DNA from: Lepidodermella squamata
Taxonomy: Eukaryota > Animalia > Gastrotricha
NCBI GenBank assembly: GCA_047495785.1
Contig: JBLDXI010000054.1
Coordinates: 186,001 to 250,000 of the forward strand
DNA length: 64,000 bases
Direction of reading: 5' to 3'
Part shown: positions 4,101 to 41,039 of the stretch, one piece after another
Numbering within the stretch: position 1 is the first letter of the stretch
How the letters are laid out: each line of letters begins with the position of its first letter
The notes under the pieces: generated by a model
Database searches by the model: none
Told to the model about the DNA's origin: nothing
The model's input: the letters and a program-made list of their open reading frames with translations, nothing else
Translations under genes and position numbers: made by a program

Positions 4101-5627
4101 ATAAGGAATCACGGCGAAGCCATGACTTCTAGGGTTACTTTTCACGGGGAATAATCCCGTGGTGATGTCTATTTTCTAATATTGGCAACTCTCAATCGAT
4201 TATCGATTATCGATTATCGATTATCGATTTTGAAATGAGTTCTTTTTTTAAGTGATCAAAGTTATCGCTGCTTGTTACTTTGTGGAAGATGATTACCCCT
4301 ACCGATTTTCCTTCTGAGTTTTGGACGTCTATTCCACTAGACTTTTCCAGTTTCAAAATGGGTCGATTATTCCCAATTTTCAGCTTCAAGGGGGTAAGCT
4401 TATCCCCTTCGGAGTTTTATCGCAGCTCTCTGGGAAAATAACCACGGGAATCCCCCACTCTCCCATAAGCCTCTGTCCATAGTCGGATCAGATATATATA
4501 AATCAGCAGCTGCAGTCAACTCACAATTTTCGGACGACGATATCAGAATCCGAACCCATTCCAATGAGGAAAGGCCCAACCCATGACTGGGCGCTCATCA
4601 GCGAATGCAAAGTGTTCAAGTTTCCGAGCATATCGACATCGGCGATGCAATTTGTCGCTGGTAAGGGATAACTACCATTGAGTGGAATAATGGAAATCTG
4701 ATTTACAAGCAAAATTCCAGATAAATTGTTCTTTGATCAACGCCTAATAACCTACATTATACGTGCGATAATTGCGCTGCGTTTGGAACACGATTCGATA
4801 CGTTGAGCTGCCTGAATTTGTTAGAAAATTACTGTTACCGCAGCTTGGCTGCGATTCGCCAAAGTCTGTGGTCCCGTTCATCGGGGGTCGATAAGTGACA
4901 TTGATTGTTGCAGGCTGTCTGAACTCGTTGAAACTTGCATAGACCTTACCACCAACTTCGAGCTTGTGCCAAATTGTCCCGCTACAACCAAAGCTGATGA
5001 AGGAATCGTAAATCGCAGCTGAGCTATTCGACTTTGCTAAAAAAATTAATAATTGAATATTAATTCAGGGCCAAAGGAGCATAAGAATCTCAACAACTTA
5101 CTTGGCACCATTTCCACTGCTCGTCCGATGCCGAAGCCGAACCAAGCGTCTGAATTGCTGGTTTTGTAGGTAATCGAAACCTCAACTTCGATTCGAAACG
5201 GAGCAACTACGCCATGTTTATCTGTTATCAACTGCCAAGGCTCTGATTAGTTCAGTTGGTGAAACTTGGTGAAACTCACTGTCCCCGCAACCAAGCCGAA
5301 GGTTTTGTTCGTATTTGCCTGCGAGGAGATGAGCTGGATGCCGTTTTGGACGAATGCAGCCGAGTAGGAGAGAGTCAGGCTGGTGTTTCCATTTGCATTC
5401 GCATCTGTTCGGTCGAAAGACAGGTCAGCTACATATCGCGGAGTTCCTGCGAGTGATTCTTGAAGTGGAACAGAAGCTGTGTCTGGTACAGGGTCTGTTC
5501 CTGATTCAACCCCACCCAATCCTAAATTTGATGAATATTCGATTACTGATAAGTACCATCCGAACCTCGTACCTGCAGACAGAATTGTAACGATGAAAAC
5601 CAAATATGAGTTATAATAAAGCATCAT
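1103..5627 (-). CDS. Fusion gene A: signal peptide + two tandem unknown beta-rich domains + Ser/Thr stalk + Cys-loop pLGIC (~985 aa, 10 exons, intact)
   Basis: Hand-spliced exons 5627-5573, 5521-5280, 5240-5102, 5036-4756, 4697-4525, 3378-3156, 3104-2975, 2919-2663, 2613-2483, 2429-1103 total 2958 nt, are open, and use only GT-AG introns. The last exon has loop A WRPS, Cys-loop CKLDLTTFPFDQQTC and four TM helices, but no signal peptide of its own. Confidence 0.85.
3667..3894. mobile_element. MITE-like inverted repeat in intron 5 of gene A
   Basis: gtcttatttcatccgacatc...gactaaaatcatccgac (~3678-3724) is the imperfect reverse complement of gtcggctgattttagtc...gatgtcggatgaaataagac (~3836-3881). 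Confidence 0.6.
4195..4229. repeat. (ATCGATT)x5 microsatellite
   Basis: Read directly from the sequence. Confidence 0.85.
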
Positions 5628-8600
5628 AAGGCATATTTCATGAAAAAATTCATTCACCTACTTCACCCTAAGCTTCATCTCAGCTGCGGGGCGTAGGCAG
5701 AAAGTAATGCTGTTTACAGGTTTAGTAGCTTTTAGTAGCTAAGGCTGGGAAGCTAAGCTGGCAAATAGCTCTATGGCTAAATTGCTTTCAACTCAATTCA
5801 AAGATTTTTAAAGGATTTAAAAAATTAATATCATAATGTGCTCGCCTTGGGCCTTGGGTTTATTGACCTGTGACTTGGACAATTTTAAAAGCTTGGGTAC
5901 ATCGCTGAGAACAGGTTTATTACTTATTCCACATAAGTATATTATATTATGTTTTCATTGGGTTTTTTGACACTTGATTTTTTGACATTTTCTGAATTAG
6001 ACGCCTGAAACGACGTCTGACGACGTCTGAACCTCTGAAAAATGAGACGATACCTCTGGGTTTTCCCAGAAATTTATTTCGGAGTTTTCATTCATTACTA
6101 TCAATAAAACTTAATAATAATAGATAATAGTTGTATTTAAGCCTCTCATTGACTGAAGAGTCATTAACGTTCCCGGTTTTGAAAATTCTTTAAGACAATC
6201 ACCACCACTAGTTTCAGCAGATCTTAAGACTTAGGGACAGAAACGAGGGTCATAGCGTTAGCGATATTGAATACCGTATTGCTGCAAATACTGACCCACG
6301 CTCGTTTAGTAACCCACCTCATTTAATAACCCAGGCAAATTGATGAGTCAGATACATAACCCCACCCTCGTTTAATAACCCGGGTTAAAGCTTTTAAGGG
6401 TTAATAACCCGTCGACGATAAAGGACCACAAGCCACAAAGAGGTATTTGATTACGCCGCACAGTCTCGCGTGGATTAGTCATCAGCGTGTCGCAACGACT
6501 CCGAGGCCGCACGAAAGTGCAGGTGCTGTGCTAAACAAATACGCGAGTGGCGTTAATCCCTTGGAGGAATAGAAGAAGAGAAACCTCTTCATCCGCACAC
6601 GAAGCTTGGGACACGAAGGCGTCACGCTGAGACCCGAGCGAAGGCGCCAGAAAGGCTCAGCGGAACGAGAGTGACTAGGAAAACAGCGAAATCGTCTTTC
6701 ACGATGAAAATTAAAAGCTTTTTTGATGGAAATTTTGAAATTTGACGAATTGATGAGTTAAGTCATTGGAAATTTTAGAAGCTCTACAGGGTAGCCAAAA
6801 AGAGCTGCAGAGGGCAAAATCATTGATTTGAGTGCGCATCCCTTTATAGCATCCCTGAAAAAAATAAAACATTCTTTTACCCATGAAATTCTTTAATTTC
6901 TCGAAACTCCTCATTAAAAATTGATGCGCACTCCAATCAATGAACTTTGCCTGCCTGCGGTTCTTTTTGGCCACCCTGTAGTTGTATAACCCCACCCTCA
7001 AATAGAAATCACTCTCGAATAGAAGCCCAGTTTTTGGTAATTTTTGGCCTTCCAACTTTGCATAAGCTCGTGATAGTATTTACAGCATTACGGTAACTCG
7101 GATTTAGGGTCGTTTTTACGTCCTTTTAAGATCACGGGTGAATTGAAACTGGCTCTTCATTAGAATATCCTTAGATAAATAGCCAAGTTTAACAGTTCCA
7201 AACTCAGCCTAGGTAGTTTCGAGCATGGTCACAGGTCCAATACATGTTAGTTCACTTCATGAAAATTACCGCTTAATTTCCTGAAATCCTACTTTATTCT
7301 TTTAAGATTCGTGAACGTGAACGTAACGGGTCAATAAGCATACAATACAAAGTCAATAAAATACTTATCGATTGTTTATAACAATCCTCTGCAATTGAAT
7401 AGCCGCTCTGGTTGAAGTAAATATCCAGAGGGCAAATTATTATGGCGATATATGACTTGGGCACTTCACTGCGATAACACTATACGTATTCCAGCAAACA
7501 CAAGCGAGTTGAATTGTGGATTCGAATACAGCTCAAACACCAGCGGCAGCAACCAAGTATAAATTGGCGCTTAGGATGAAAAAACCAGCCGCAAGAACTA
7601 CCAGGATGTCGCAGACACGTTTAAATTCCAGTGGTTTGAAGCGGCGAAAGAGCTGGATCGGAATTGTGAATTTTACTACATCACGAGCCATAAATATCTC
7701 ATAGATGGCAACGGCAGCCATAGTCGCGTTGAGACTCAAAGCATAGTTTGCCAACAATATTTGCTGATCAGTCTCAGGAACGCTTCGCAAGACATCAGAT
7801 TGCGCAACGATCAGTGACAGCATGATTGTGCAGCATATGGCTGGGCGGTCCGGGACACTTGGATCCATCAACAGAGTACCAAGTCCAAGTACTATAAGGA
7901 TGTAGCAGGGGATCATAAAATTCACAATGTAATAGCTTGATTCGCGTTTGAACGTCAGCGTAATCCGCGCATAGGAAACGCGCGATGATAACGCCCTTAT
8001 TCGCGCTGGCATTGTACCCTGTTCACTTTTGTAATTTGATAACTTCCAAACTCCAAAGTCCAGAGACCCAACCACTTTAACGTACAACCCACCAATCGAT
8101 AAAAACTCCGTGTTTTCCTCTAAAGCCATCGTCATATCGCAGGTTTGGTTGTCGAAAGGAAAAGTGGTCAGGTCCAACTTGCAACTGGTTGCGAATGTCC
8201 CAACACGTGTCCAGTGGAAAAACAAGGTTCGATTCGGCCGAGTTGGGTAGTAGGCGATTTCAATCTTCTCCCCGCATACCGGATTGATTATGTCAAAATC
8301 GGGCGTTTTGTTAGGGAAAATCATCGAAGGTCGCCATATGTCAGTTCGCCGGGTTGAAACGAGCCGCTCCTTGTCCTCTGCACCTGGGGCTGTATAGTTC
8401 GCACTACAGGTGGATACCATCCACTGCAGCATGAGAGAGCCCCAAAAGTAAGCCCTCTGTTGGTCTTGCTCCATCGATTCGACATTTTCCAGGTAAACGG
8501 TGGCATATACCGTTGATGCACGTCCAGGTATTCGCTGCTCGACGCCAAGATACTGGCACGGAATAATATCGTCAATAGCCACGGTTGGCATTAAGTTCCC

Positions 8601-15415: not shown

Positions 15416-16573
15416 ATGATGAAGCAGCTCCACGTAGCCTTTAAGCTATGCTTTATTTTCAGTATTCACGACCTTAATGCACAAAGTTTGTCCTCCAATG
15501 CGACGTATAAGGCCGCTGAAATACTGACTGCGAATTGCAACATTGGACCAACAGCTAATTCGCCGACTGAATACGACGACCAGCCAACAACTTTACGTCT
15601 TGTCCTTCAGGTAGACAGGTTTTACGGCGTTAACGACGTGGAGGAATCAATCGCATTCAAAGGCGTTCTTCAGATGATATGGATGGTTCCCTGTGTTGCG
15701 AACTACGTAAACAACCCAGCTAATCAATGGCCGGCCAAATTGAAGAAGCTGCTAAATGAACCGCCGGATCTGTATTGGATACCCTCTGTTGGACTAAGAA
15801 ACGCTATCAACCAAATGAATCTCGATAAAGCTGACGAAGTGGCTGAAGTGTTAACTATCTATCCGTTTGATGGGAAATTTATCGGTGGTTACACTGGGAG
15901 GTGGATTTATTCGTGTGATCTCGATCTTACTATGTTCCCATTCGACACCCAAACATGTACTGCTGTCATTCTCCAGCGAACAACGACCGATTTTATCGTC
16001 ATTCAATCAGCGGATTTCGTGCGAATCAGCAGTGAAATAATGGCTAGAAACTCTAACTGGAGGATGATTTCTAATTCGACTGCGATTGACGAATTCGCGG
16101 TAGCAAATTTGGGCCCTCTAAGGGAAGCAAGTTTTACGATGGTTTTGAAGCGGAAAGCCGACTACTACCTGCTGAACATGTTCGCGCCAAGTTTCGTCCT
16201 ATCTACCTTGGAAATCGCAGCTTTTGGAATCCCGGCAACTGAGCCTGATCGAGCTTCATTCGCCTGTTCAGTTATGCTGTCGATTTTCGTGCTTCAGGGC
16301 CTGTTTTCTGGGGCTGTCCCACAGTCACCCAGGCCTATTGTCACTTCTTACTACGTTCTCGGAGTAATCATGTTCGCTATGGGATGCTCGACCTACGCAG
16401 CTATCATGTGTGGCTACTGCATTATGTTCGAAAAACGGGCAAACAGAATTGTAAAATTTTGTGGCTTTGAATTGCGCGCCTTTGTTGTTATCGACATCAT
16501 TGCTTTCATCATTTTCTTTTCGTCGTACATTCTGTTCAATGTTGTTGTTACTTTCTACCTTGCTTTCGCTTAA
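15416..16573 (+). CDS. Intronless Cys-loop pLGIC subunit with very short M3-M4 loop (385 aa)
   Basis: Signal peptide, WIPS loop A, CDLDLTMFPFDTQTC Cys-loop, four TM helices, M2 start PDRASF. No vicinal cysteines. Confidence 0.92.
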   Translation: MMKQLHVAFKLCFIFSIHDLNAQSLSSNATYKAAEILTANCNIGPTANSPTEYDDQPTTLRLVLQVDRFYGVNDVEESIAFKGVLQMIWMVPCVANYVNNPANQWPAKLKKLLNEPPDLYWIPSVGLRNAINQMNLDKADEVAEVLTIYPFDGKFIGGYTGRWIYSCDLDLTMFPFDTQTCTAVILQRTTTDFIVIQSADFVRISSEIMARNSNWRMISNSTAIDEFAVANLGPLREASFTMVLKRKADYYLLNMFAPSFVLSTLEIAAFGIPATEPDRASFACSVMLSIFVLQGLFSGAVPQSPRPIVTSYYVLGVIMFAMGCSTYAAIMCGYCIMFEKRANRIVKFCGFELRAFVVIDIIAFIIFFSSYILFNVVVTFYLAFA

Positions 16574-16758: not shown

Positions 16759-17747
16759 TCAAAGTTGATCATGTGGCGATGCAAAATCAAAGCAAAATAG
16801 AAGATTCAGTGAACGTTTTTTATCACTCTCGGGTTTGCCAGTAGAAACCAGTAGAAACCATCTTCGAATCGCCTTGAAACTTCTGGAATATTTGGCTGCG
16901 ATTTCCCTCATGCGGCTCGTAGGCACTGTCATGCTGCTGCCACTGTTCCGAAATTCCTTCAAAGTGAACATCGCCAATGAAAAGTGAAAAGCGTTCAGTC
17001 ATTTCAGTTACAAACCTTCTCCAAGCATTCAACTATCTGCTTGTTGTTTATTATCCATTGCCTTCGCTCCCTATCATCCGCCCGCAATCTCAAAAATTGA
17101 TTGCGCAATGAATTCACGGAGATTCCAAATCTGTTAGCCAACTGCACGGCTCTCCCCTGGTAAAGTTGGGGTGATGTGCGCGCTTCCTAGAAATCTCAAA
17201 TAAAATCCAAGAGGAACAAAATGATGGATCTGTTACCTTGGCTAAAGACTGCAGCTGATTTGAAGTTAGTCTGACATACTTTCTTCGCATTGTTGCCAGT
17301 TTGTTTTCTCGAAACCAATCTCTAACGCGTTTAACAGTGATACCAAGCCGTTCCGAAATATCTTCAGATCTTTTACGAGGTAGACAGCAGTTTGACGCCA
17401 ACTCCTATGTGAATATTTGAAAGTTAGTAAAACGAAGTTGTAGTAAATCACTGTGCCTTTTCCAAAATATCCACTTGAGATCGGGTAAGTGCCGGTCCAG
17501 GAGTTGAACGGAAACGAGCTCCTGTTTCAGCCTTGAACTTTTGAAGAAACCACCTTCTCACGTAGCCGCAGGTTTTTCCAATTTTTCCGGCCACCTCCAA
17601 TAATCTTGGGTCGTCGCGTCTGAATGGCGGATATGGGTTTTTCTTATATGCTTCTTCGAGGACGGCAATTTTATCAAGCAAGGCTTGCTTAGCCCTAGTA
17701 ACCCGGCTGATTCCCCGTTTTGTTTGCGCGCGGCTTAACCGGCTCAT
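16759..17747 (-). CDS. Multi-homeodomain gene H1 (4 divergent homeodomains, 4 exons)
   Basis: LEEAYKKNPYP...VRRWF; ILEK|ELASN...VRDWFREN; SLAK|EARTSP...; CLEK|EFRNS...IRRWF. All introns are phase 0; the first has a GC donor. Confidence 0.75.
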
Positions 17748-18307
17748 GATATGTGTTTCTGTGATCTGAATGAGCACCTAACGTTCTAAAGTCGGCTTAG
17801 TGATAAGATGACTATTTACCAATTAATTAGAAAAATTATGTGTAGAAAATATGCAATGAAAAGAATTTAATCAACACGATCGTTGCCTTGTTATCTGTTC
17901 CCGTTTTTGACAGCTTCGACAAAACAGCCCAAATACAATACAAAATTATCAGCATCGACAAAATTGTCCACATACCAATTTCTTCGAACTTCGAATGATA
18001 AAGGATTTGGCGTATTATGGGGTGGGCGCCTATTGCTTAAAACGGGAATGCGAATTCTCACTGTGGGAATGTGTGCAAATCAACGTGCGCGGTACATGAA
18101 GCACGCTCGAAACATCGGATCTTCAAATCGGAATCCACCTAATTTCCGATAATAGGATACTATTTGAGATGTTTTGTACTGAATATATCTAGCGTCGATG
18201 GGTAACTACCACTATCGCTGTGACATTAGACATTACGCTTGTTTGATTGTTTTCTCCATGTTGTTGCTTCATCTGCTACGTTATTTTTCCATCTTCCCTC
18301 ATTGTAG

Positions 18308-20262
18308 ATGGAAAGCTCCAGTAACTTTGACTTCACTTTAAAAGTGATAGATCAAGATTCGAAAGCACCCAGCGCTGTTTATAGGAACCACCCCGGAAGT
18401 TTCACCTTTGAAGAAGTAGAAGCGCTGAGGAATGTAAGTTAAGTTTCGCCATTCATTGTACTTTCCAATTACTTGTCGTTCAAGGCGTTCCAGAAAAGTG
18501 CAAGACCGAGTCGGGATGTTATTAAAGAATTAGCCCAGCGATTTTCGAGATCAGAAAAATCATTCGCGGGTTGGTTCAGCAGAGAAAGAGGAAGGCATGG
18601 CATCAAGCTCAAAGTCCCAATTACTGAATCGAAGCGAGCTATTTTGGACCAGGTTGAAGTTCCAGAAAAGACGCAAGTTGTAATCCTTTTGCTATTCCTA
18701 GGCATTCGAGAAACCACTTGACGAAAGAACAATACAGTCCTTGTCTATGGAAACCGGCCTTTGCCCCTCAACAATACGATTTCAGTTTCTGAAGAATAAG
18801 AAAATTGCCAGAGGAAATATTGGACCACTAACTCACTCTTTTCTGCCTGGAGTTGAACGAACTGAGGAAGGCAAGTCAATGTAAAATAAAGTTTTCAATC
18901 TAAAGAAGACATTTCGCATGTCAGGCTTTCATCGATAACAACTATCCCTCAAAAGAAACTCGAAAGGAATTGAGCGATAGGTTCAAAAGGTCACGACTCG
19001 TGGTTCGTCAACGAGAGGCTTTGGCTTAAAAGAAACAGCCTGAGGAACCAGTTCGAACTCTCAGCCGATCAGGGAAACTTTCTGAAAACGGTGAATATGA
19101 CAATTTGTTTCATACTTTGAAACGTTTGATTTTGAAGGAGCTGTTGAAGAACCCAGCTTTGCCCCAAATGAGGATTGATGTTTTGACGGCTGAAAGTGGC
19201 ATTCCTCAACAGGCTATCAGGAATTATTTCCGTCTTCACAGACCCAGGAGGGATCCGATGAAGTATGATTCGTTGAAAGGAAAAATATCCTGTCTGCCAT
19301 TGCAAGTCATGCACCTTCGCCCTCCAATGCCTTCCCCAGAAAAGTTGGTCATTCTCGAAGAGCTATATGCTAAAAACCCAAATTTAAGTTTGAAGAAGAA
19401 CGACCCGAAAACGCTTGAAATCATGCGAAAGATCGGCTACTCGAGGGAGTACCTGCTCAGGTGGTTTCATTTCCGGTTCAGGTCAGAAACAGGAGCTAAG
19501 AGGAGGCCGAACTTAGAACGGGGTCTTACCGCTTCTCAAACAGAAGCTTTGCAAAAGGTTTGAATCATCAATCCCTTTCAACATGAATTTTACTTACGTT
19601 CTCGCAGGAATTGGCTTGCGATATCAGCCTCAAGAAAGAAAGAGCAGAAGATATAGCTCAGCGTTTGGGTCTCACAGTTTGTCGAGTTCGGCATTGGTTT
19701 GACGACAATCGGCCTCATCGAATTCGAGCCCGTCGGGTAAAACTAACTGAATATCAGAAAAATGCAATAGCAGAGGTAAGAACCTTTGATGGTTAATTTT
19801 TAATTATCTTACATTTGAACATATGAAGGAGGCACGGAAATTCACTCTATTGACCAAGGCCAAACGTCAAGAATTGAAGGAAAAGTTGGGCTTATCAGAC
19901 AATGTGATCCAACACAATTTCTCCAAGCTTCGGCCTAAAGAAGTGAAAATAGCTATGGCTAGTAGGATCGACGGGGAACTATTGGATCTTCTGAGAGAGG
20001 TAATAAATTCGAGTTTGAATTTCTCTACGTTTAAGCGTATTTACAGGAATTCCGAAATTCCGGGCCAGACATGAAAATTCCGATGAGCCGGTGCCATGAA
20101 ATTGCTGAAAAGTATGCCATGAAGGCGTCTACGATAAGAGCCTGGTTCAAAAGAGCCCGAAAGCAAATATTGGTGAAGCAAGAAACGACGAACTCGGCGC
20201 CAGCTCGTGAAGAAACTATCCCAGATGGCAAAATGGAGTTCGAATGGCACATCAATCTATAG
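18308..20262 (+). pseudogene. Multi-homeodomain gene H2 (8-homeodomain type) with two frameshifts
   Basis: Colinear with H4/H5. A ~2-nt deletion near 18830-18847 and an ~11-nt deletion near 18995-19000, relative to H5, break the frame. Confidence 0.7.
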
Positions 20263-20517
20263 ACAATGAGAGGGTGCATCACTCTCAGATTCACAAAAGA
20301 TGATAAATAAAGTTAGCTTGAGTCTTTTATTAGTTTTGGAACTTTTTGAGTTAGATTGTTGAAAAACGCATCGTGAACTGCTGTAGTTGAAATTAAACGC
20401 CAACCCGATGCATTTAATTGCTTTATTAAAACTCAAATGAAATATGAGAATGTTAAGATCGAAACGTGGTTTTTAACTTTCAACAAAACTGACTGGCTTT
20501 TTTGGTGACCTTCAGCA

Positions 20518-23500
20518 TCATAATACAGTGGACAATACGAAGTAAAGATTGACAGCCGCAGCAGCTTGAAATGCGACTAGAAAGGCAAATAGGTCAAATA
20601 TTCGAATTATTGTCATTGAGATGAGGTTCCATAATTTAAGAATTCTCAAATATTTTAGCTCTTGCCTTGCCATCAACGCCGTAGCAACTATCTGATACAG
20701 AGCGACTGCACTTATTGTTGCAGTGAGGTACAGCATGTAATTTGCGTAAATAACTTGCTGATTTGTATCTGGAACGCTTTGCAACACATCGGACTGAGCC
20801 ACAACCAGGGCTAGCATGACTGTGCTGCAGATGGCTGGTCTATCTGGCACAGCTGGATCCATTAGAAAGGTTCCGAAGCCGAGAACGACTAGGATATAAC
20901 ATGGCACCATCGAATTTACGATATAACTCCCAGGATCTCGTCTAAATACAAGTTTCAACTTCGCATAAGACACCGTTGAAGAAACTCGAGTTGCTGACAC
21001 AGCGGATCCTTTCAGTCGATGATATGACTCAAGGCCCCAAACCCCACTAGAAAGATCCTCCGGCATTCTGATGTAGAGCCCTCCGAATGAAATGAAATTA
21101 TTCGGTTCGTCCAGAATTAGCGAAATTTCACAGTGCTGCCGGTCAAACGGAAATTTCTCTACTTCGATATTACAGCCAGCCGTGAAAATCCCAACCCTCG
21201 TCCAGTGAAAGAACAAAGTTCGATTAGGCGAGGTTGGATAATAGGCTATGTCCATTTTTTCACCACATTCCGGGGTTGCGATATAGAAATCCGGGGTTTT
21301 GTTGGCAAAAATAACCGACGGACGCCAGATATCCGCCCTTCGTGTTGAAACTAATCGCTCCTTCTCGTCAGCCTCCGGTGCTGTGTAGGTATCTTCGCAG
21401 GCTGCGACCTTCCATTGAAGAAGAACAGACCCCCAAAATGAGACTTGCAGCTCCCTTGGCTCGATCGAAACAACTCTTTCGATAGTTAGCGATGCGTAGA
21501 CTATCGTTCCAGGGCTTGGCGAACGTTCTTTAATGCTGAGATAAGGACAGGGCATGAGATCTTCAACTTCGACACTCGGGTGGTGCTTTCCATCGAAAAG
21601 TTGAGGAATAGGAAAGCCTGAGTAAGGATCGGGAATTTTCATCGATTCATCGTCTTCCGAAAACTTTTGCCATCCTGTGCTTAATGACATGGATAGGGTC
21701 GATTCAGTGGTTTGGGGAATTGTCGGGCGTTCTGTCGTCGATGTGTCCACGTTTAGGGTGGATGGTCGTAGTTTCTTGACTAGTTGTTTGGGTTGTGACT
21801 GATGATGTTTCAGATTGCGTAGTTGTTTTAGTTTCAGTTGTTGTTGATGAAACTCGAGTCAGTCGCTGGCTCACTCCAGGATTCAAAAGCCACAAATATC
21901 TGAAAATCAAATGTTTAAACCAGTCTAATCACAGTACATGTACAAATTTACGTGTTTCGAACGTAGATGTTCGCATTGTTCCCTTTCAAACCCGTCAAAT
22001 AAAATGTTATTGGCCCAGTTTGAGTTGTAAAGTTCGAGAAGCAAACTTCAGCCGGCGTATAGCCGAGAGCCGGGAGTGGGGACATAGCCAGCTAGACAAC
22101 GAGAAATCAGTTTTATCTAACATTTTCTAGTTTGAAATTTACAGTGAGGGAGTCGTTCGAACTTTGAATTATGAGCCGATACTTGGCATTTCCTGAGGCG
22201 TTGAACAGGTCTGGAATTCCGCATGCTGGTGCCGTCTTGAACGTGTAGTTCAGTGGAGCGGCAGTTAAATTTGAAACCGTGCCTGGCTGGTAGGTTGCGT
22301 AGAACTCACCAGCTCCAACAGCTATGCGTTGGAATAACATCACGCCCCCGTACCTCTTCACAGCGTTATGAACAGGGCTACCAGCCGTAGCTCCTTGAGG
22401 CAACAAATGTTGAAAAAATGGCTGAAATTGGGGTGAGAAACTACCTGTGGTCGGAGCCATGTTAACTGGAGCGACATTAATGCCAAACCAAGCTTCAGAG
22501 CCGTTTGTTAGATATGTCACGTCGATGTCCATTTCCACTCGCCATAAATAATTCGCTAAAGTTGGTCCAATATCCTAAGCCAGAGTTTCAAATTTAATAG
22601 ACAAATTTTCGAGAATGAATCTTACACCAAGAGTTTGCATCCTCCCTCCGTTGATCGTGTTTGAGCTAGTGGCTACGTAGCCAACGGAATCCACAATACT
22701 GGATTGCGGAATCAGCCAACTAGGGGCCGATACGCTCTTGTCGTACGCATCGAAGCTGATACTGTTGAAAAAGTTAGGATCCCCTCCCCATCCTACCGGC
22801 AGGGTTAGAGAGTAGAGGTCAGGACCAGGGATGATTGTACCGACAAGGTTCCAATAGTAACTGAAAAATTGAAATAATTGATGGATTTTCATGGACCGCC
22901 AAGGTGGTCTTACAATTTCTTGACAAGAACTTCTCCATCCAGCCCCGAGGAGGCAAGGAAGAACGGACTTATGATTCCGTCGTTCATGAGATAGAAGAAG
23001 AGCCCATTAACGCCAGATACCGGGATGTTGGTGAGGCAAGTAACAGGCTGGAGTGAGGCAGAGCCACTCATTGGTACAATTGAAACCTGTCAAAAAAAAA
23101 TCAAACCATTTGTTTTATTTCAATAATTCTGAACTCACGTTGATCTTCTCGAAAAGAGCTTGGATAACCATTCGATAACTCATGCTACCAGAGCTATTCA
23201 AAATCAATCCACTCCCGCAACCAGGACTTGAAACGCTCAGAGATGAAGCATTGAACGGCATTGCGACTGTTAGATTTGTTTGAAGCGTTGGCCCGTACTT
23301 GGGCGAGTCCTCATAGCCCGCGTACAATCTTCCGCCAACTTCAAGCTTTTGCCATATGAAAAACCCAGGACCATAGTTGGCAAAGGCATCAAACCCAGAG
23401 GAAGCGTTGTTCGACTTGCCTGAAAAGAAAACATGAGTATAATAGGTTTTCAGACGATTTCAAAAACTTGCCTGGCTGGAAATAGGCCCGTTGCCCTATC

Positions 23501-23989
23501 CCGAATCCGAACCAAGCATTTGAAGCTGAAGTTTTGTAGTTAACGTCAACTTCGAATTCTATTCGAAATGGCGTGACAATTCCCATGTTCGAGACGATTT
23601 TCTGAATAAATTGAATGGTCTCAAAAGCTGATGTTTAGAAAGCTAAATGTTAGCTTACACTGCCATCCAACATGCCAAAAGTTTGGTTGGTAGACACTAG
23701 CATTGAGTTCAGTTGGTAACCATTTGATCCGAGTTTTGTGGCGTGAAGCATTGTTGGGGTCGAGTTGCCGCTGATTGAAGCATTATCGCGGTCGAAAGAC
23801 AGCCCAGCAATGTATCTTGGCGTTCCTGAAAAGAGTTGAGGAAGGGGCACTGAAGCCGTATCTGGAACATGATTTACGAGGCCGTTACAACGCCCTGGAA
23901 TATCCAGATATGAATTTTCAAATAATTTCATTAAAATTGATACCTGCGTAAAAGGCGGTTGCAAGTGCTATCAACACTTTGTATAACAT
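20518..23989 (-). CDS. Fusion gene C (divergent paralog of A/B); frame break in the stalk
   Basis: Signal peptide MLYKVLIALATAFYAG|RCNG, the same exon phases and both repeat domains, and pLGIC with CNIEVEKFPFDRQHC. The stalk ORF (21704-21910) and channel ORF (20518-21750) are in different frames. Confidence 0.75.
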
Positions 23990-24916
23990 TGTTGCGATAA
24001 TTGTTTCAAATCATAGCATTAGCTAGGCTTTATAATGTGGAAGGTCCTCAATGCAGACAGCGAGGGCTGTGTCGTGTTTTCTGTTTGCATTGAGTCAATT
24101 TCTAAATAATTAATGGCGATTCTAGTAGTCTTTTGCGTTTAGCATCTGTGTCATTCCAGCTGAGTACACTCTCTCTAACATGAAGTCCTCTTTGAAAATA
24201 CTCCCCCATCAATGTTTATGCGTCTCCGGACGGAAATTCAACACATTCCAGGGGGCATTGTCACTATTCAAGCTCAAATATGTCTGCAGTTGAAAATCGG
24301 CGTGAACTTTTCACTTCTGTCATGGGCATCTAAATTAAGTTGGAGACCAATCGATTTAGCGAAAATTTTCCCATTAGCTTGAAAATTTTCCCATTAGCTA
24401 GCTCTTTAACCGACAAGCTTGCTATTGTACTGAGCAATGACAAATAATCTGGCACTATTGGAACACTATTCTGGCTTGACAGGTGGCACTCTAGCTAAAA
24501 TGGAGCTTCGGGAGTTGCGGGAGACTCTCTATCTTCCTTTTAGAACAACATAATTTCACACTTTGCGGCCAGATCAGCGTGCAGGATGCTTGCAGCACGC
24601 ACGGCGCACTCTATTTCAATGATCGTTTATTTCAAAATTGGTGGAAAGATTTTATTTGCATTAAACACTTCAATCTTCCCGATATACTACTTTCCTGCCC
24701 GATACTTTCCTCCAAACAGGGCAAAAACCGATTCGAAGGATTGCGAGCATTTGGACACTTGTTCGAAGTGCGAAGCTGTCTATAAAACAGAAACAAATCA
24801 CAAGGCCAGGTTAATGCTGATTAGTTTCTTAGTCATTTGTATTTTTGTTGACATGTTTTATTTTAGATTGTTAGATTTCTTTTGTTTCGGATAACTGAAT
24901 AGGAAATTCAGCTATC

Positions 24917-25832
24917 ATGAGGAGATCGAATTACGGGCAAGCAAACCGGAGAATAAACAAGGTACCTACGACCAAGCCCGCTTTGCTTGAGGAGATCGTC
25001 GTCCTCGAAGACGAATATAAGAAAAACCCATATCCGCCATATCGACGCAACGACCCGAGAATATCGGAGGTGACCAAGAAAATTGGAAAGAGCTGCAGGT
25101 TTCTTCGAAGGTTCAGAGCTGAAACAGGAGCTCGTCGCCGTTCAACTCATGGACCGGCCCTGTCCCAATCTCAAATAGAAATTTTAAAGAAGGCATCTTA
25201 GCTTACAAATTTAATTCACCAATTGTCTAATTTTCGCGTATACAGGAGTTGGCGTCAAACACCTGCCTGCCTCGTAAAAGAGCGGAAGACATTTCTGAAC
25301 GACTTGGTATCACCGTTTTCCGCGTTAAAAATTGGTTTAAAAAAAACAAACCTGAATCCATGCGAAAAAAGTATGTCAAACTAACTTCAAAACAGCTGCA
25401 ATCTATAGCCAAGGTAACAAATCCTATATTTTTTTATTGTTTTAGATGTTACTGATTTCTAGGAAGCGCGTAAATCACCCCAACTTGACCAGGAGAGGGC
25501 CTTGCAATTGGCCAACCGAATAGGAATATCTACGGATGCATTGCGTCATTATTTTTCGAGATTTCGGCGGGACATTGATGACCCAAGAAAATGGGTGAAA
25601 AGCGACTGGCAGTTAGTTGAATGCTTGGAGAAGGTATGTATAACCGAAATGAAAAATCGAAACTCTCAATCTTGATTGGCGATGTTTTTTGAAGGAATTT
25701 CGGAACTGTGGCAGTAGCATGTCTGTGCCAACGAGCCGCATAAGGGATATTGCAGCCGAATATTCCAGAAGTTTCAAGACGATTGAAAGATGGTTTCAAC
25801 GCGCTAAAGTAGCGGCGAAGGCAGAAGCATGA
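24917..25832 (+). CDS. Multi-homeodomain gene H3 (paralog of H1, 4 exons)
   Basis: Open after splicing; first intron has a GC donor. A 15-nt in-frame deletion removes the Trp of the first homeodomain helix 3. Confidence 0.72.
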
Positions 25833-26043
25833 AACTTGACTCATCCGTGTTGCTTTTTGATTGACTACAAAACGATTAAAGGTTTTTCACGGAAGTATCG
25901 CCACATGGTTGATTTTGAATTCACGATAAATAAAGCAACTTAATTTCTGTATAATTCATGTTCCCATCAAAATGATTTGCCCTGAAATAACCCAACGTTT
26001 TATTCTATAGATTTTATGCTTCCGGCTATTACTCATAAAATAA

Positions 26044-27964
26044 ATGATTCCTGCTGTTGATGAGCTGGCTGTGAAGGTCCTGCAAAAGGGCGAGGAATTA
26101 CCTGACGCTGTTTTGAGACGCAGCTGTACCGGATGGACGTATAAGGAATTGAATGTACTTCGAAAGGTCTGACGCCTAGTTTCATGAAGCTAAATTCAGG
26201 ATATTATTGTCATGAAATTGTAGACGTTTTCAGCCAACACCAGACCTAGCCGTGAAGAAATTCACAAATTGGCGCTGCTGCTCAATAGATCCGATTCGTC
26301 TATCAGCAACTGGTTCAGCACAGAACGGGCTAAGCGAGGCATAAAATTTAAACAGTACATCACCGAGGCAAAACGCGCACTGCTAGACAAGGTAACACGA
26401 TATGATAGTCATTCGTTGTATTCGAAGTCCAAGTGTGTATAGGCATTCGAGCGAACTGAAAACATGTTCGCTAATGACAGAGCTAGAGCGCGAGCTTTAG
26501 CGAAAGAAGTTGGATTGACCCAGGTTACAGTCGAGGTGTACTTGTGTCAAAAAAGGCAGATTGCTCGAGGTAATGTGGGACCAAGAAAGAATCCACTCTC
26601 AGAGAAAGAACTTCAACAACTGCGAGAGGCACGTTCATATTGTTATGCTTTCTATTTATATGACTATTTTCTGCCTGTGATGCGTCCAGGTTTTGGATCG
26701 CTTCAATTACCCATCGAAGCAGCTTCGAGAGAACTTGGCCGCGGAGTTCAACCGCCCTCAGGCTTGCATTGATCTTTGGTTCGTGAGAGAGCGAATCAAA
26801 TTGGGACGAAATGACAGAAATAAACGTTACTACAACCTTTCAGCTGAGCAGGAAAAATGTCTTGAAGAGGTTAATATCATCTTCGAAATATTCATCTATC
26901 TAAATCTTGTGATAAAGGAATTGTCGAAATGCTCCAAAATGTCACTAGGACGAGCAGAAGAGTTGTCTATTAAAACTGGCATACCGGAATCTGCTATCCG
27001 CAGATATTTCTATATTCACAAGCCCCGCCCAGATCCGCCCAACTTCGACGAGCTCTCTGGCCAGTTGCCATGCTTCCCAGTAAATATCATGCACCTTGCG
27101 TTACCAACAACACCGCCAGATAAGCTCCTAATTCTCGAAGAGGAGTATCAGAAAGATCCTCATCTGCCGTTCGAAGTGAACGACCCGAGATCGATGGAAA
27201 TTTCGCGGAAAATCGGAACAGGCTCCGAGTACGTGAAAACTTGGTTCCGTTTCCGTCACAGAGCTGAAACAGGAACTCGCTGCCGCGTGAATCCTGCTAA
27301 GGCCTGGTCTCCGTCTCAGCTGGAAATTCTCAAACAGGTTAGCTGATTTACTTTTTTCAAATTATACCCAATTGATTTCTCGCAGGAATTGGCTGCAAGC
27401 CCCAGCTTGCCTCCTAAAAGGGCGCACGATATTGCTGAACGCATCGGTGTTCGAGTTTCCCGAGTACAGTATTGGTTCGGAAAAAACCGCCAAAGAGTTA
27501 GAGCGAAATTCGTCAAGTTATCTCCGGAACAGCTACAATTTTTAGCCGATGTAAGCTGCCATCCGTTAGTTCTGCTGCCCTGAATTTCCATTTTTTGTCT
27601 CGTAGGAAGCGAGGAAATCGCCACGCCTAGACAAAGCTAGGACGTTGGAGTTGGCTAAGAAGTTGGGCATTTCTACGAATTCAGTTGATCACCATTTTTA
27701 CAAGTTAAGACCACCGGGCACGAAGCATCAAACGCAGTTAAAAATCGACGGGAAGTTGCTTGAAACTCTGAAAGAGGTATTTTTCCATTAAGGTCTTGCT
27801 CATTTTCATGAAGATGTTCTTCGCAGGAATTTCGTAAAAGTGGCAGCGAAATGCGAGTCCGTAAGTGGCGCGCGAAGGAAATAGCGGCTGAATATTCAAG
27901 GAACGTGGATACGATTTGCGGGTGGTTTGCTAGGGCTAGACAACAAGCTCTGATGACAACATGA
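26044..27964 (+). CDS. Multi-homeodomain gene H4 (8 tandem divergent homeodomains, 8 exons, intact)
   Basis: Spliced ORF is open. Helix-3 motifs are ISNWF, VEVYL, IDLWF, IRRYF, VKTWF, VQYWF, VDHHF, ICGWF. Seven phase-0 introns lie at the same helix-1 position. Confidence 0.8.
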
Positions 27965-28015
27965 CAAAAATGCATTCGAAATTTTATATATCCCTGTGAT
28001 CCTCTCTTTTTGTAG

Positions 28016-29717
28016 ATGGAAAATTCCGTAAGTTGTGGATTTTCATTGAAAGCGATTGAGGCGGATTCAAAGGCTACCAGCCTGATATATAGGCATCATC
28101 CCGGCAGTTTCACCTATGAAGAAGTCTTGGCGATGCGTGAGGTGACTAAATTTCCACTGTTACTTCTTCAATGTTGGCTCAGGTGTTTCAGAAGAATCCA
28201 AGACCTAGTCGAGAGGTGATGCGAGACTTGGCTCTGCGATTTTCGAGATCGGAAAAATCGTTCGCCTCGTGGTTCAGTAAGGAAAGGGGGAGGCATGGCA
28301 TTGTCACTAGAAGCCCACTAACCGAATCGAAACGAATTATTCTGGATAAGGTTTTGTTTCACAAAATTTTTCCATTCCATTAATTGAAGTATTTGCTGAA
28401 GGCATTCGAGAGCCTTGCTTTTCTTGACGGAAAAGCTACGAAAGATTTGACTATGAAAACCGGTCTTAGCCAACAGACCATTCGCATTTACTATCGAAGG
28501 AAGTCAGGCATCGCTAAAGGCAACATCGGACCCAGTAAGAATCGGTTTTCACCCGAAGAATTGAATGAGTTGAGAAACGCAAGTTGTATTACGTTTCGTT
28601 CTAAATTCTGATTTCGGTCTCCAGGTTTTCATTGAAAGCAACTATCCTTCGAAAGCACTGATAAAGGAGTTGAGTGAGAGGCTGAATAGGTCACAGTCCA
28701 GTATCACTTTTTGGTTCGCTAGTGAGAGACTGTGGCTTGAACGAAAGAACTTGCGGGAACGATTCGAACTTTCCACATGCCAAGAAAAATTCCTGAAAGA
28801 TGTAAAACCTCCTTACGTGTGTTCATAGTTAGTGTACATCTGGACCTTGCAGGAGCTGATGAGAAATCCTGTGCTACCCCAAATGAGAGTTGAACTTTTG
28901 GAGGCGGAGAGCGGAATCCCTCAAAAAGCCATCAGGAAGTACTTTTGTACAAATCGCCCCCAAAAGGACCCGGAAAAGTTTGAGATCGGAGATCTGAGAT
29001 CGGAAACGGGAGCTAAAATGAGGCCGAACCCTGAAAAAGCTCTCTTGGGTTCTCAAATCGAATCTTTGCAAAAGGTTTGTTTCAGCTTGTTTCAGTCAGT
29101 CAAAATAATCGATGTTGTCGCGTTTAGGAACTGGCTTTGAACGCTCATTTGAGGAAAAGTAGAGCCGAAGAAATAGCCCAACGACTTGGTCTCACAGTTA
29201 GCCGAGTTAGCCATTGGTTTGGCAAAAATCGCCCCCATAGACTCCGTGCCAATCGAGTCAAATTGACAGAGGAACAGGCCAAAGTTCTGTCAGAGGTTGG
29301 CCGTGATTTCAATTTTCCTCATCGAATTAATTCAGATTTCACAGGAAGCAGCGAAATTCATTAATCTTGACAGCGCCAAGCGAAAGGAATTGATGGAACG
29401 ACTCGGCCTATCCGATAATGTTATCGAGTACAACTTCTTCAAGTTACGGCCGAAAGAAGTGAAAGTCGCTATGAACAAAAAGATCGAAGGGGAGTTGCTC
29501 ACCGTTTTGCAAGAGGTAACTAGGAGTTGTTGATTCTTCGATTCTCCCATTCAACCACTTATTCCAGGAGTTGCGAAATTGGGGACCTGGAAAGAAGGTA
29601 CCCAGCAGCCGGTGTTATGAAATTGCTGAGAAGTACACCGTGAACGCTCAAACGATACAATGCTGGTTCGCGAGGACTCAAAAGCTGCGTCTAGTGAAGC
29701 AAGAAGCCATCAAGTAA
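28016..29717 (+). CDS. Multi-homeodomain gene H5 (7 homeodomains; fifth deleted in frame)
   Basis: Spliced ORF is open and closest to H2. The HD5 segment is replaced by gagatcggagatctgagatcgg at ~28982-29003. Confidence 0.78.
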
Positions 29718-31145: not shown

Positions 31146-33452
31146 TCATGAAGATTTGAGTTGATTGATTTGATTTGAAGGTCCACGTGAATGAGCGGTC
31201 GACTTGATGGTGGAAACCGGAGCGTTGCGCTCGCCGAATTCCCCTGCCATCCATAAGGAACAAATGAGCACAGTCAACGAGACAGCAAGCGTCGCAACAG
31301 CGATTTGCTGCTCAACAGGACGCTGGTCCAGAATAATGTAAATCAAAACCCCAGCCGCTTCAATGCCCAGCGCGAATGCTACTTCAAACTGCAATAGTTG
31401 CGATGATTTTTTCGCTGAATTAGCCCTGGAAGCTTGGCGCAAATGAATGGCCCAGTTTGCTGCCTGAAGCAATGGCAGCAGTTGAATGGCTATTAAACTC
31501 AAAACCCAACCGAGGCGATTCCCAGCCACCGAGCTGCATGTCTCGCTCAATGTTACATCTAAAACATCAGATTCAAAGTTGTAAGACTCGCTAATAACTG
31601 ACAATCCACATTTTGAGGGATCTGCGACTTGCCACGCTGTGAAAACTGCAATATCCACGACGAGAATCGAAAGAAAGCGGAAGGTCGAGCTTCCAGCCCT
31701 TTGCTTCAATGATTGATATCTCATTTTCAATGTCGGTTTCCCTCTCCTGGTTTTGAGCTTTGCTTTTAGGGAATTATAGAAAAATACGCCAGTTCTCATT
31801 ACAATACTGCAGTGGATAAGAGTAACTCCGAAAAACATAAGGCTATGCTTAAGGTTCAGATGAATAACAGATGGCATTACGTCATTTCTGACATAAAACA
31901 TCGCACACATTTGCAGGACGATACATCCGGATAGGCCGACGAATATCGGCAAAGGATCGCTTACCAGTTTAATTCGATTCAAGTAAGATGCAACACGGTA
32001 GATTGTTAGAACCATAGCGAACCCTGCATAGAAAATTATGGCCAAGCTTTGGCCAAGACTAGGCCTAGCTATTCTCGATAGATTCAGCCGAGAATCTCGA
32101 GGAGGTTTGCCATCTCCAGTTTTCCAAATCGATGGGCCTAATTGCCTGATTTTCGCTAGGCTTTGATTGCCCTCCGAATTGTCAATCACGTAAACCCGTT
32201 GGAACCTTGTTTCCCGCGTCCAATAAGTTAGAAACACAGGAATCCCTGACAAAATGCCATTTTCATCGTAATGAAGGCGGGAAACTCTCAGCCCGTTGTA
32301 ATCAACCCCTCTCGCAGCATCGTTGACAATTTTCGAAATGTCCCCCGGCTCTGCGGTGTATCGATTCAAGGACGAGTTAATTAGGCGTAATCGCCGCTCA
32401 GCCGCGTCGAGAGTCACGACAGACTGCACAACGGCGTCGTGGCATATGTACCGGAGCTCGTAGAAAGGTCCCCGCGACTTGTTAGTGAAAAGGTCAAAAT
32501 CCAAATCGAATTGTTGCCTGTTATAACCAAATGTCGAATTACGTCCTGGGTCAATATTTTCGTCGAGATTCGTCAGCCAAACCATGTATTTCAGCTGTTC
32601 GATCACCATGTCCCGATTACACCCAGGCGGGAAGACTAACAATGGGGTAGTCAGCGGGTCTAAAATAGCGCCATAGGTCGTGAATAGGTACCTACCCCCT
32701 GTCATTCTTATCATATAGGAATAACATAGGAAATGAGTCATTAGAAACGGATTTGATAGTAGAATAAAGACGATTCGAACATCGGCGGCTTTAAGAGATT
32801 TTACTACGTCAAAATCGAAGCGTCTCATCGCATCGAACCATACTACACTGATTCCTTCGAGGTGAGCTCGTTTTCGGAACAGGTCAGCCTCAGTCGCGAA
32901 TTTGAACATCTCGTAATCTGTGATAATCCCGATTCGCGACCACTTTCCGACTTCTTTGATGAACTTCAGATAAGCCCAATGGCGAGCTTCAGTTGCTTCC
33001 ATCATCTGATAGACATTCGGGAATCGAATTTTGTCATTCAGGTAGTCTGCGGGGCATCCCATTGAAATCACGGTGAAATTCATGTTATGAGCCATGAGGC
33101 CCAGCGCTTTGCAGCCATCGTCATTGAAAGGTCCGATAACAATAGGGGCTGGAATAAGCCAGGGTCTTCCCTCCATGAAGTTTGTGTAGTTGAAAAAGGC
33201 GCTTGTTTCAGGCCGAGTAGCCGCAGAATGCGTGTCTCCGAATTCGAGCTTGATTTTGAAATCGGGCAGAAATTCCCGCTGACTATTCGCGTTTTTCTCA
33301 GCGATTTGAGCCGCTTGCATGCATTCTCGCATCACCGTGTTCTCAGGGTTTTTCGGCCATTGAAAATTCATCAAAATATGCAGCGTTCCATTTTTTTCAG
33401 CTGCCGAGAAGCTGATAGAGAACAAAATCAGAAAAGAAACTCGTATGAGCAT
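31146..33452 (-). CDS. Intronless divergent class C GPCR, GABA-B-type architecture
   Basis: Signal peptide, Venus-flytrap-like ectodomain (IVIGP...C, YLNDKIRFPN, WSRIGII, ADVRIVF), W..GDGKPPRD linker with no Cys-rich domain, then ~7 hydrophobic segments. Confidence 0.8.
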   Translation of the reverse strand: MLIRVSFLILFSISFSAAEKNGTLHILMNFQWPKNPENTVMRECMQAAQIAEKNANSQREFLPDFKIKLEFGDTHSAATRPETSAFFNYTNFMEGRPWLIPAPIVIGPFNDDGCKALGLMAHNMNFTVISMGCPADYLNDKIRFPNVYQMMEATEARHWAYLKFIKEVGKWSRIGIITDYEMFKFATEADLFRKRAHLEGISVVWFDAMRRFDFDVVKSLKAADVRIVFILLSNPFLMTHFLCYSYMIRMTGGRYLFTTYGAILDPLTTPLLVFPPGCNRDMVIEQLKYMVWLTNLDENIDPGRNSTFGYNRQQFDLDFDLFTNKSRGPFYELRYICHDAVVQSVVTLDAAERRLRLINSSLNRYTAEPGDISKIVNDAARGVDYNGLRVSRLHYDENGILSGIPVFLTYWTRETRFQRVYVIDNSEGNQSLAKIRQLGPSIWKTGDGKPPRDSRLNLSRIARPSLGQSLAIIFYAGFAMVLTIYRVASYLNRIKLVSDPLPIFVGLSGCIVLQMCAMFYVRNDVMPSVIHLNLKHSLMFFGVTLIHCSIVMRTGVFFYNSLKAKLKTRRGKPTLKMRYQSLKQRAGSSTFRFLSILVVDIAVFTAWQVADPSKCGLSVISESYNFESDVLDVTLSETCSSVAGNRLGWVLSLIAIQLLPLLQAANWAIHLRQASRANSAKKSSQLLQFEVAFALGIEAAGVLIYIILDQRPVEQQIAVATLAVSLTVLICSLWMAGEFGERNAPVSTIKSTAHSRGPSNQINQLKSS

Positions 33453-34582
33453 AGCATTTACTTCGAAATTGAGTAGACGTGAAATAAAACTCAATACTAA
33501 TGAGTGATGAATTTACACAACACAGAAATCAGTACCAACTATTAAACGCACTATCATTTAATTGGCTAGACGAAATTACTCGAAGTGGTATGACTTCAAA
33601 GGAAAAAGACTGAAAGAAATATATTGAGAGGACATAATATAGAGAAAAAACAAGCAATTTCACACGCACACAACGCACTAATCAGTGAAGATATGTCTGA
33701 TATCGTAATTGGAGGAAATTAAAACTACGATATCTCTGCTCGGACGAACCGCGAAATCGCCATCAGCTTCTGTTTTTAGGCTATTACTCTCATGAAATGT
33801 TATCCAAATTGAAATCCTCCTTAAATCGCCCCAGATGATTCACAGTTGATCATAGACTTGCCAATCTGGGCCCTTCGGAGCAAAAATTTGTGTTCGAAAC
33901 TAACTCCTAGTTCAAGACTCCTATAAAATTGAAACATGAGAATCACTATAGAATCCTTGAACTAGGGGGTAGTTTCGAATATTCAACTGGATGAAGCTCC
34001 ACTAAACGAACTGCACAGTAACTTTTAAAAAAGACTGAAAAAGGCTCATTGGGGTCACATCCAGTTGAATCCGGCATTGGAACCCGTTCCCAGCCTAAGC
34101 TTGGAAGGGCTCTACAATGCAGTGCCATCAGCCGAAGTGGTATACTCAGGACGAAGATTGAATCGACAGAGAAAAGGCGTAAGCATAGTCGGATCTGGGA
34201 TTCGTTCTGGCTTCAATCAAATCCCGTTTTTCCATTCTATAAAATCTTATGAGCTATTTATGCTCAATTTTCTTAGTTGCAGTATGCAAATAGCATCAAT
34301 TTACCAATGTCAACCATTCAATCTGAAGTTCGGAAATCATAAAATGAGAATGGATTGCATAATTCCGCGCCACTTTTCTAGGCGCTTTCGCGATACCGAA
34401 AACAAACCCCATTCACAAGTCTTCACAATGAAGCATGAATCAGTTGTGAAGCTCACTCAGCTCAGCCTAATCCTACGTTGGATTATATTTCCTTTTTCGC
34501 CCCCTCTCGAGGCGCAGGCCACGCATAACAAGAGATACGCCAACTATACAACACAACGCCATTCATTTCACCACCCACAAAA

Positions 34583-40712: not shown

Positions 40713-40967
40713 ATTCGTAGGGGGAATGTCATTTACACTGCCGAATGGGAGAAAAACTGAACTAATTATTGTATTCAATTGTGGCTTTGAACTCATTAGA
40801 CCAACTTTTTATGACGAGCTCGATTGTTACTTCTTTTCAGCTTTTAAATTCAATAAAATAAAATTGGAATTTAATTGCAGAGATTTTTGCTAGAATTCCT
40901 ACGCATGGTGAATACGTGAGAACGTGTAAAAAAAATAAAAATAAAAAATAAAATGAAAATAAAAATG

Positions 40968-41039
40968 TTCCCTGACCGGGAATCGAACCCGGGCCGCCGC
41001 GGTGAAAGCGCGGAATCCTAACCACTAGACCATCAGGGA
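40968..41039 (-). tRNA. tRNA-Glu (TTC)
   Basis: TCCCTGATGGTCTAGTGGTTAGGATTCCGCGCTTTCACCGCGGCGGCCCGGGTTCGATTCCCGGTCAGGGAA forms a full cloverleaf, with downstream T-runs. Confidence 0.96.

Follow-up and report, generated by a model that had tools for sequence, protein, structure and literature searches.

The 64-kb stretch C54:186001-250000 of the 121.2-Mb, 151-contig assembly of the gastrotrich Lepidodermella squamata, called the window here, contains a cluster of five paralogous genes at positions 16759-29717, g1 to g5, that encode tandem homeodomains (HDs). A sequence-only reading of this DNA had counted 4, 8, 4, 8 and 7 domains in these genes (n = 31), and gene models built from the reading frames and splice signals of the window DNA reproduce these counts. 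Every class of g4 exon is found in g1, g2, g3 and g5 at 33-55% identity when the window is searched with tblastn, and the same search of the window with g4 exons gave no matches beyond the five genes. In addition, tblastn and alignment place exons 1-4 of g1 and g3 alongside exons 5-8 of g2, g4 and g5, in agreement with the earlier proposal that the 4-domain genes correspond to HD5-8 of the 8-domain genes.

On the minus strand, g1 (17747-16759) has four exons (17747-17457, 17404-17237, 17186-17016 and 16956-16762, with the stop codon at 16761-16759) and encodes 275 amino acids with four HDs of the HD5-8 type. The remaining genes lie on the plus strand. The first of these, g2 (18308-20262), has eight exons (18308-18433, 18485-18652, 18702-18870, 18925-19090, 19138-19557, 19608-19775, 19829-19999 and 20047-20259) and eight HDs, with a broken N-terminal half. 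The four exons of g3 (24917-25832; exons 24917-25192, 25246-25413, 25463-25633 and 25695-25829) encode 250 amino acids and four HDs. The intact gene g4 (26044-27964) encodes 516 amino acids and eight HDs in eight exons (26044-26166, 26224-26391, 26443-26628, 26690-26869, 26918-27337, 27386-27550, 27606-27776 and 27827-27961). Lastly, g5 (28016-29717) has eight exons (28016-28141, 28183-28350, 28402-28578, 28625-28801, 28853-29074, 29128-29295, 29345-29515 and 29568-29714, with the stop codon at 29715-29717), which encode 452 amino acids and seven HDs.

All 27 introns of the five window gene models are in phase 0 and measure 41-61 nucleotides. Internal exons are 165-186 nucleotides long, and exon 5 is 420 nucleotides in g2 and g4. 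In seven of the eight HDs an intron falls between HD residues 18 and 19, a site fixed by the observation that profile positions 1-43 fall on HD residues 19-60 (position 2 being F20); HD5 alone is uninterrupted and lies whole in exon 5. Each internal exon encodes HD residues 19-60 (helices 2-3), followed by residues 1-18 of the next HD, which form its arm and helix 1. The HD units repeat about every 56 residues (55-62) and abut without linkers, as fits the earlier description of the proteins as almost wholly tandem divergent HDs. The modular build that had been proposed is likewise borne out by exon lengths and intron phases, as the genes consist of in-phase exon cassettes.

Five of the 27 introns have GC donors (intron starts 17456, 18871, 25193, 26629 and 28579), and these are confined to two junction types, one at HD3 in g2, g4 and g5, the other at the first intron of the short genes g1 and g3. 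At HD3 the donor reads GCACGT in g4, GCAAGT in g5 and one of these two in g2; it is GCACAG or GCATCT in g1 and g3. The predicted GC-AG introns appear unusually frequent here. Another peculiarity is found in g4, where intron 4 (26870-26917) is 48 nucleotides long, in frame and free of stop codons; its retention would add 16 residues inside HD4.

The identity of the repeats as homeodomains, on which the sequence-only reading depended, is supported by three approaches that agree: Pfam, a profile search of the PDB and, for HD5, AlphaFold and Foldseek. The Pfam scan covered 29 exon pieces, namely the internal and last exons together with exon 1 of both 4-HD genes, each of which, the HD5 exon excepted, carries only part of an HD. 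The Pfam Homeodomain family (PF00046) matched 17 of these 29 pieces at E≤0.1, with a best score of 27.7 bits for a partial HD, and the stretch 26693-27343 of g4 scored 38.6 bits, above the cut-off of 22.9. A profile built from twenty 56-residue exon units matched 175 PDB chains, including DUX4 (2.8e-14), PBX1 (1e-8) and Engrailed-2 (4e-8). Among the best-listed PDB matches nearly all are homeodomains, the exception being two designed repeat proteins without a matched stretch of their own. External searches were run exon by exon, joined gene models served for alignment, pI and dN/dS, and the fold was modelled for HD5 of g4 only. In the AlphaFold model of g4 exon 5 (9-row alignment), HD5 forms three helices at residues 67-79, 90-99 and 103-118, with a predicted local distance difference test (pLDDT) of 79-89 and a loop of 10 residues between helices 1 and 2. 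All of the best Foldseek matches shown for this model are homeodomains or homeodomain-containing chains, with target template modelling (TM) scores of 0.75-0.87 and root-mean-square deviations of 1-2 Å.

Alignment to the hidden Markov model (HMM) locates the insertion previously noted between helices 1 and 2 of HD5, which amounts to 4 extra residues after HD position 26-27. The same alignment adds to the earlier description that HD8 also has three additional residues in its helix 1-helix 2 loop. Positions 8, 12, 16, 20, 26, 34, 48, 49, 52 and 53 form the conserved core. In particular, F49 is invariant in HD1, 3, 4, 6 and 7, W48 has an identity of 0.69 (Y/H/N/Q in HD4 and HD7), and R/K53 is found in most units. 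Positions 47, 50 and 51, which make base contacts, are among the least conserved (0.07-0.24). The proteins are also strongly basic, with isoelectric points (pI) of 9.8-10.9 and a lysine plus arginine content of 19-24%.

Residues 48-53 differ from one HD position to the next. HD1 reads W-F-S-(R/T/K)-E-R, HD2 is degenerate, and HD3 reads W-F-V-R-E-R in g4, W-F-A-S-E-R in g5 and W-F-V-N-E-R in g2. The motif is Y-F-x-x-x-R/K in HD4, W-F-x-x-x-x in HD5, W-F-x-x-N-R/K in HD6 of all five genes, x-F-x-R/K-x-R in HD7, and W-F-x-R-A-R or similar in HD8. The claim that none of the domains retains the canonical Asn51 therefore holds for 30 of the 31 HDs and fails for HD3 of g2, whose W-F-V-N-E-R falls in a frameshifted exon of the window copy and is intact in a second copy of the cluster on contig C23. 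In HD6, an invariant Asn stands one position later, at residue 52, in all five genes.

HDs occupying equivalent positions in different genes share 41-51% identity, in comparison to 7-32% between HDs at different positions. HD1 is nearest to HD3 (32%), and HD4, HD6 and HD7 group loosely together (22-25%). Given this excess of same-position identity, the eight-unit array must have existed before the genes duplicated, and its units have escaped homogenisation. The earlier analogy with poly-zinc-finger proteins, taken in the sense of repeat turnover, is accordingly not upheld, as each HD position keeps its own identity. Duplication of symmetric cassette exons, in a single ancient episode, is the most likely way in which the array was assembled; an origin from a single cassette exon is suggested by the common position of the introns, their symmetric phase 0 and the repeat period of 56 residues. 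Whole-gene duplication would then have followed, with the 4-HD genes representing the HD5-8 half with a start codon of its own, and the family probably follows a birth-and-death mode of evolution. A tblastn search at E≤5 of the sequence preceding the 4-HD genes (17748-18307 and 22900-24916) found no relics of HD1-4, the best match having E 0.035 in a tiny database.

A whole-genome search with g4 exon 5 revealed five further matches that form a second set on contig C23. The segment C23:1118001-1158000 is collinear with positions 13-34 kb of the window and includes the flanking receptor and protease genes; nucleotide identity ranges from 79% to 96% and is mostly 87-96%. All five genes of the C23 copy have unbroken reading frames over 4-8 exons, and the g4 exons of the two copies are 95-100% identical. 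Comparison with the paralogs and with C23 locates lesions in g2, g3 and g5 and substantiates the domain loss and frameshifts that had been reported. Relative to g5, exon 3 of g2 is 169 nucleotides long (2 short) and exon 4 is 166 (11 short), so that both are frameshifted; the C23 exons, at 171 and 177 nucleotides, are both in frame. Exon 1 of g3 is missing 15 nucleotides, by which W48-F49 and the three following residues of HD5 helix 3 are lost; these nucleotides are present in C23, where the exon measures 291 nucleotides. In exon 5 of g5, an in-frame deletion of 198 nucleotides has removed HD5, while exon 5 of the C23 gene is 420 nucleotides long and encodes the full domain.

As the C23 copy is unbroken and has HD5 in g5, the ancestral set is read as 4, 8, 4, 8 and 8 HDs. 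Since the C23 copy is without these lesions, the two frameshifts, the 15-nucleotide deletion and the domain loss in the window are recent, and the seven-HD gene g5 reads as an eight-HD gene following a recent deletion of 198 nucleotides. A sequencing error is an unlikely source of the 11- or 198-nucleotide deletion, as the assembly was made from HiFi reads (PMC11660948). The C23 copy has peculiarities of its own. Intron 3 of its g2 measures 9,002 nucleotides (C23:1126007-1135008) owing to a retroelement insertion, which contains an open reading frame (ORF) of 1086 amino acids with RVT_1, RNase H and integrase zinc-binding domains and resembles a long terminal repeat (LTR) retrotransposon. Its g1 has an intact frame, but the donor of intron 1 is AC.

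Pairs of homeodomain matches lie at a slowly growing offset along C54, the window contig, and C23, which suggests that the collinearity extends over at least about 260 kb. The C23 copy is either the other haplotype, left uncollapsed, or a recent segmental duplicate. On this question, probes taken from the beginning of C54 and the terminal part of C23 match only dispersed repeats.

The paralogous proteins are 35-64% identical and synonymous sites are mostly saturated, with a ratio of non-synonymous to synonymous differences per site (pN/pS) of 0.33-0.58. These values accord with the fast evolution that had been proposed for the cluster. The synonymous excess is significant in every pair, with binomial P values from 1.4e-3 (g1-g3) to 2.9e-21 (g2-g5), indicating that the paralogs are under purifying selection. 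Between the window and C23 copies, synonymous divergence (dS) is 0.025-0.29 and the ratio of non-synonymous to synonymous divergence (dN/dS) is 0.2-0.5. Exons mismatch at 3.4% of positions and introns at 4.7%, and indel events number 2.5 per kb in exons and 8.3 per kb in introns. Exon 3 of g3 (25463-25633) is only 76% identical to C23:1146939-1147109, and over exons 2-3 the window g3, the C23 g3 and g1 are about equidistant. The distance between the two g3 copies may be due to faster change or to conversion by a paralog that has not been seen.

Genome-wide copy number, a point raised by the sequence-only reading, comes to two loci: matches at the level of the family (>54 bits per exon) occur in this genome only in the window and on C23. 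The next-best genome match (51 bits), at C54:2186-2194k, consists of ORFs of about 300 amino acids with two HDs about 134 residues apart, and belongs to a different family. Searched against 1.84 billion representative proteins, the profile gave 966 matches, the best at 171 bits over 17 stretches, which is the level of generic HDs; no family-level match was found in this library, which gave no self-match and evidently does not contain this genome. JGI metagenome contigs also gave no family-level relatives.

A close likeness in kind is offered by Caenorhabditis elegans, in which ceh-100 encodes 12 HDs and ceh-99 encodes 4 (Hench et al., 2015; PMC4448998). These genes lie in duplication-rich regions and have no orthologues in other Caenorhabditis species (PMC4448998). 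Like g1-g5, they encode many tightly packed divergent HDs, with units down to 55 residues in the ceh proteins, and a long form and a short, 4-HD paralog occur in one genome. A feature of g1-g5 to be set beside those of ceh-100 is the presence of phase-0 introns that split seven of eight HDs at one and the same codon boundary. The genes ceh-99 and ceh-100 belong to another phylum, and the likeness is one of kind only. Orthology is not expected, given that the phyla are distant and that orthologues are lacking even within Caenorhabditis (PMC4448998).

Other known systems resemble the cluster in part. The zinc finger (ZF) class (ZHX1-3, HOMEZ, ZFHX3/4 and zfh-2; Holland et al., 2007; PMC2211742) also has several HDs per protein, some of them divergent, but is distinguished by C2H2 zinc fingers and long linkers, neither of which is found in g1-g5, and by conservation across animals. 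DUX4 and other double-homeobox genes, as well as PRD-like expansions of the Obox/ETCHbox type, resemble the cluster in their tandem arrays, rapid divergence and restriction to particular lineages; unlike g1-g5, they have at most two HDs per gene and no cassette exon structure. DUX4 differs further in its recognition helices, which read W-F-Q-N-E-R in HD1 and W-F-Q-N-R-R in HD2 in the PDB profile alignment. KRAB-type poly-zinc-finger genes are likewise clustered, fast-evolving and made of small tandem DNA-binding modules. However, KRAB-type arrays gain, lose and homogenise their repeats, whereas HD positions in g1-g5 have kept their identity since before the genes duplicated.

Among individual proteins, a Timema "Homeobox domain-containing protein" is also a poly-HD protein and matched over 10 stretches, at the level of generic HDs. 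Four proteins from ENA contigs (P0004, P0005, P0010 and P0013) are similar in build, with about 480-600 amino acids and approximately 6-9 HDs, several without Asn51. These proteins reach no more than generic HD similarity and are distant from this genome. With other clusters here P0005 shares 25-33% identity, and it is no match to the g1-g5 family. P0004, P0005 and P0010 have an acidic C-terminal motif in common. The g1-g5 family adds one more to the multi-homeobox families, fast-evolving and confined to a lineage, that nematodes and mammals already exemplify.

Overall, the cluster is best explained as a lineage-restricted multi-homeobox family that originated from exon cassettes, evolves by birth and death and probably binds nucleic acid, and this account as a whole is considered likely. 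Its functional part is put forward with middling confidence: nuclear nucleic-acid binding, of non-canonical or low specificity per domain and with affinity gained from 4-8 tandem domains, would be the most likely function. These strongly basic proteins retain the homeodomain fold with its core residues (L16, F20, W48, F49 and R53), and avidity would come from the domains in tandem. On the earlier proposal that the proteins may read long DNA or RNA sites or serve as scaffolds, the high pI and the retained R53 lean towards nucleic-acid binding. Such a pattern is shared by other fast-evolving homeobox expansions.

Several observations weigh against this account. The loss of Asn51 and the lack of constraint at contact positions 47, 50 and 51 argue against canonical, sequence-specific reading of DNA. 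The 4-HD genes, the least constrained of the five, are under weak constraint only, with dN/dS of 0.6-0.85 over exons 2-3, and with lesions in three of its five genes the window copy is at least partly dispensable. The gene models require GC donors in 5 of 27 introns, one of which is AC in the C23 copy (g1 intron 1), and splicing is predicted from reading frames, GT/GC-AG signals and conservation. In addition, the description of the family as lineage-restricted rests on thin sampling, as the protein library may lack other gastrotrichs.

The alternative that survives best, though it is judged unlikely, is that the proteins are scaffolds or cofactors for protein-protein interaction that do not bind DNA, with HDs serving as stable three-helix modules. 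In ZF-class proteins some HDs serve dimerisation instead of DNA reading, and HOPX and the dimerising HDs of ZHX proteins provide the comparison. Such a role is suggested by the absence of Asn51 from 30 of 31 HDs, by the variability of positions 47, 50 and 51, the least conserved in the domain, and by N-terminal arms that are not uniformly basic. It is at odds with the pI of 9.8-10.9 and the 19-24% of lysine and arginine, with the R/K53 of most units and the conservation of residues 52-53, and with the W-F-x-x-N-R/K of HD6 in all copies.

That the cluster consists of decaying pseudogenes with residual open frames and no present function is improbable. The frameshifts in g2 and the deletions in g3 and g5 of the window could be read in this way, as could the 9-kb retroelement in g2 intron 3 and the AC donor in g1 of the C23 copy, and the dN/dS of 0.6-0.85 in part of the 4-HD genes. 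Despite these signs, all five C23 genes are open over their 4-8 exons with splice signals, the donor of g1 intron 1 excepted, the synonymous excess is significant in every paralog comparison, and the frames are intact although the paralogs are old (dS saturated).

An extension of the nucleic-acid-binding account, about as doubtful as the pseudogene explanation and if anything slightly more so, concerns the symmetric phase 0-0 exons. Regulated skipping of these exons would yield in-frame proteins with chimeric HDs varied in number and order, such that the gene might act as a combinatorial generator of multi-site nucleic-acid readers, with the HDs that lack Asn51 perhaps using an undescribed recognition mode.

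Zinc-finger families are absent among the Pfam matches of the 29 exon pieces, a scan that did not extend to the first exons of the 8-HD genes, which are 41-42 residues long and run directly into HD1. The absence of zinc fingers, together with an HD1 that begins about 25 residues from the N-terminus, sets the genes apart from ZHX and ZFHX, orthology to which had been named as an outcome that would overturn the original proposal. With regard to the extended loop of the three-amino-acid-loop-extension (TALE) class, HD8 has three added residues between helices 1 and 2, and HD5 has four, but after positions 26-27; HD8 has no P-Y-P motif and reads W-F-A-R-A-R or similar, and Homeobox_KN matches only at E 0.004-0.02. 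Though DUX4 heads the PDB profile search (only by summing two stretches), PBX/Exd of the TALE class gives the best single-HD matches and HD8 has its loop extension, divergent orthology to a known multi-homeobox class, whether ZF (ZHX, HOMEZ, ZFHX), DUX or TALE, is scarcely credible, as no scanned exon matches a zinc finger or has room for one, HD8 lacks both P-Y-P and Asn51, the HD5 insertion follows position 26 instead of lying at 23/24, and none of the 1.84 billion representatives matches at the family level.

The genome paper of L. squamata reported 122 Mbp in 157 HiFi contigs and analysed the Hox genes only (PMC11660948). The g1-g5 cluster overturns nothing known about homeobox genes. With 4- and 8-HD proteins put together from in-phase exon cassettes, it provides a clear case of the assembly and subsequent decay of multi-domain, transcription-factor-like genes, in which a domain-by-domain history, paired short and long forms, and two copies at different stages of loss are displayed together. 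It also supplies a natural panel of homeodomains lacking Asn51 with which to test what such domains bind. To our knowledge, gastrotrichs are almost unexplored genomically.

The homeobox genes are adjoined and interspersed by intronless ORFs at 15416-16573 (plus strand) and 20518-21750 (minus strand) that match Neur_chan_LBD, the ligand-binding domain of Cys-loop receptors, at 35-38 bits. Further along the window, a trypsin-like gene starts at 29856, an ANF_receptor ORF occupies 31146-33494, and a tRNA-Glu (TTC) gene lies at 40967-41039 on the minus strand. Close to the end of C23, the segments 1470001-1476000 and 1435039-1441038 are 100% identical and inverted; this could be a very recent duplication in inverted orientation, or a fold-back artefact of assembling amplified DNA. 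Near the start of C54, the 6 kb at 2001-8000 recur at eight or more sites in the genome (on C54, C30, C29, C15, C65 and C4), with 96-100% identity, and look like a young dispersed repeat.

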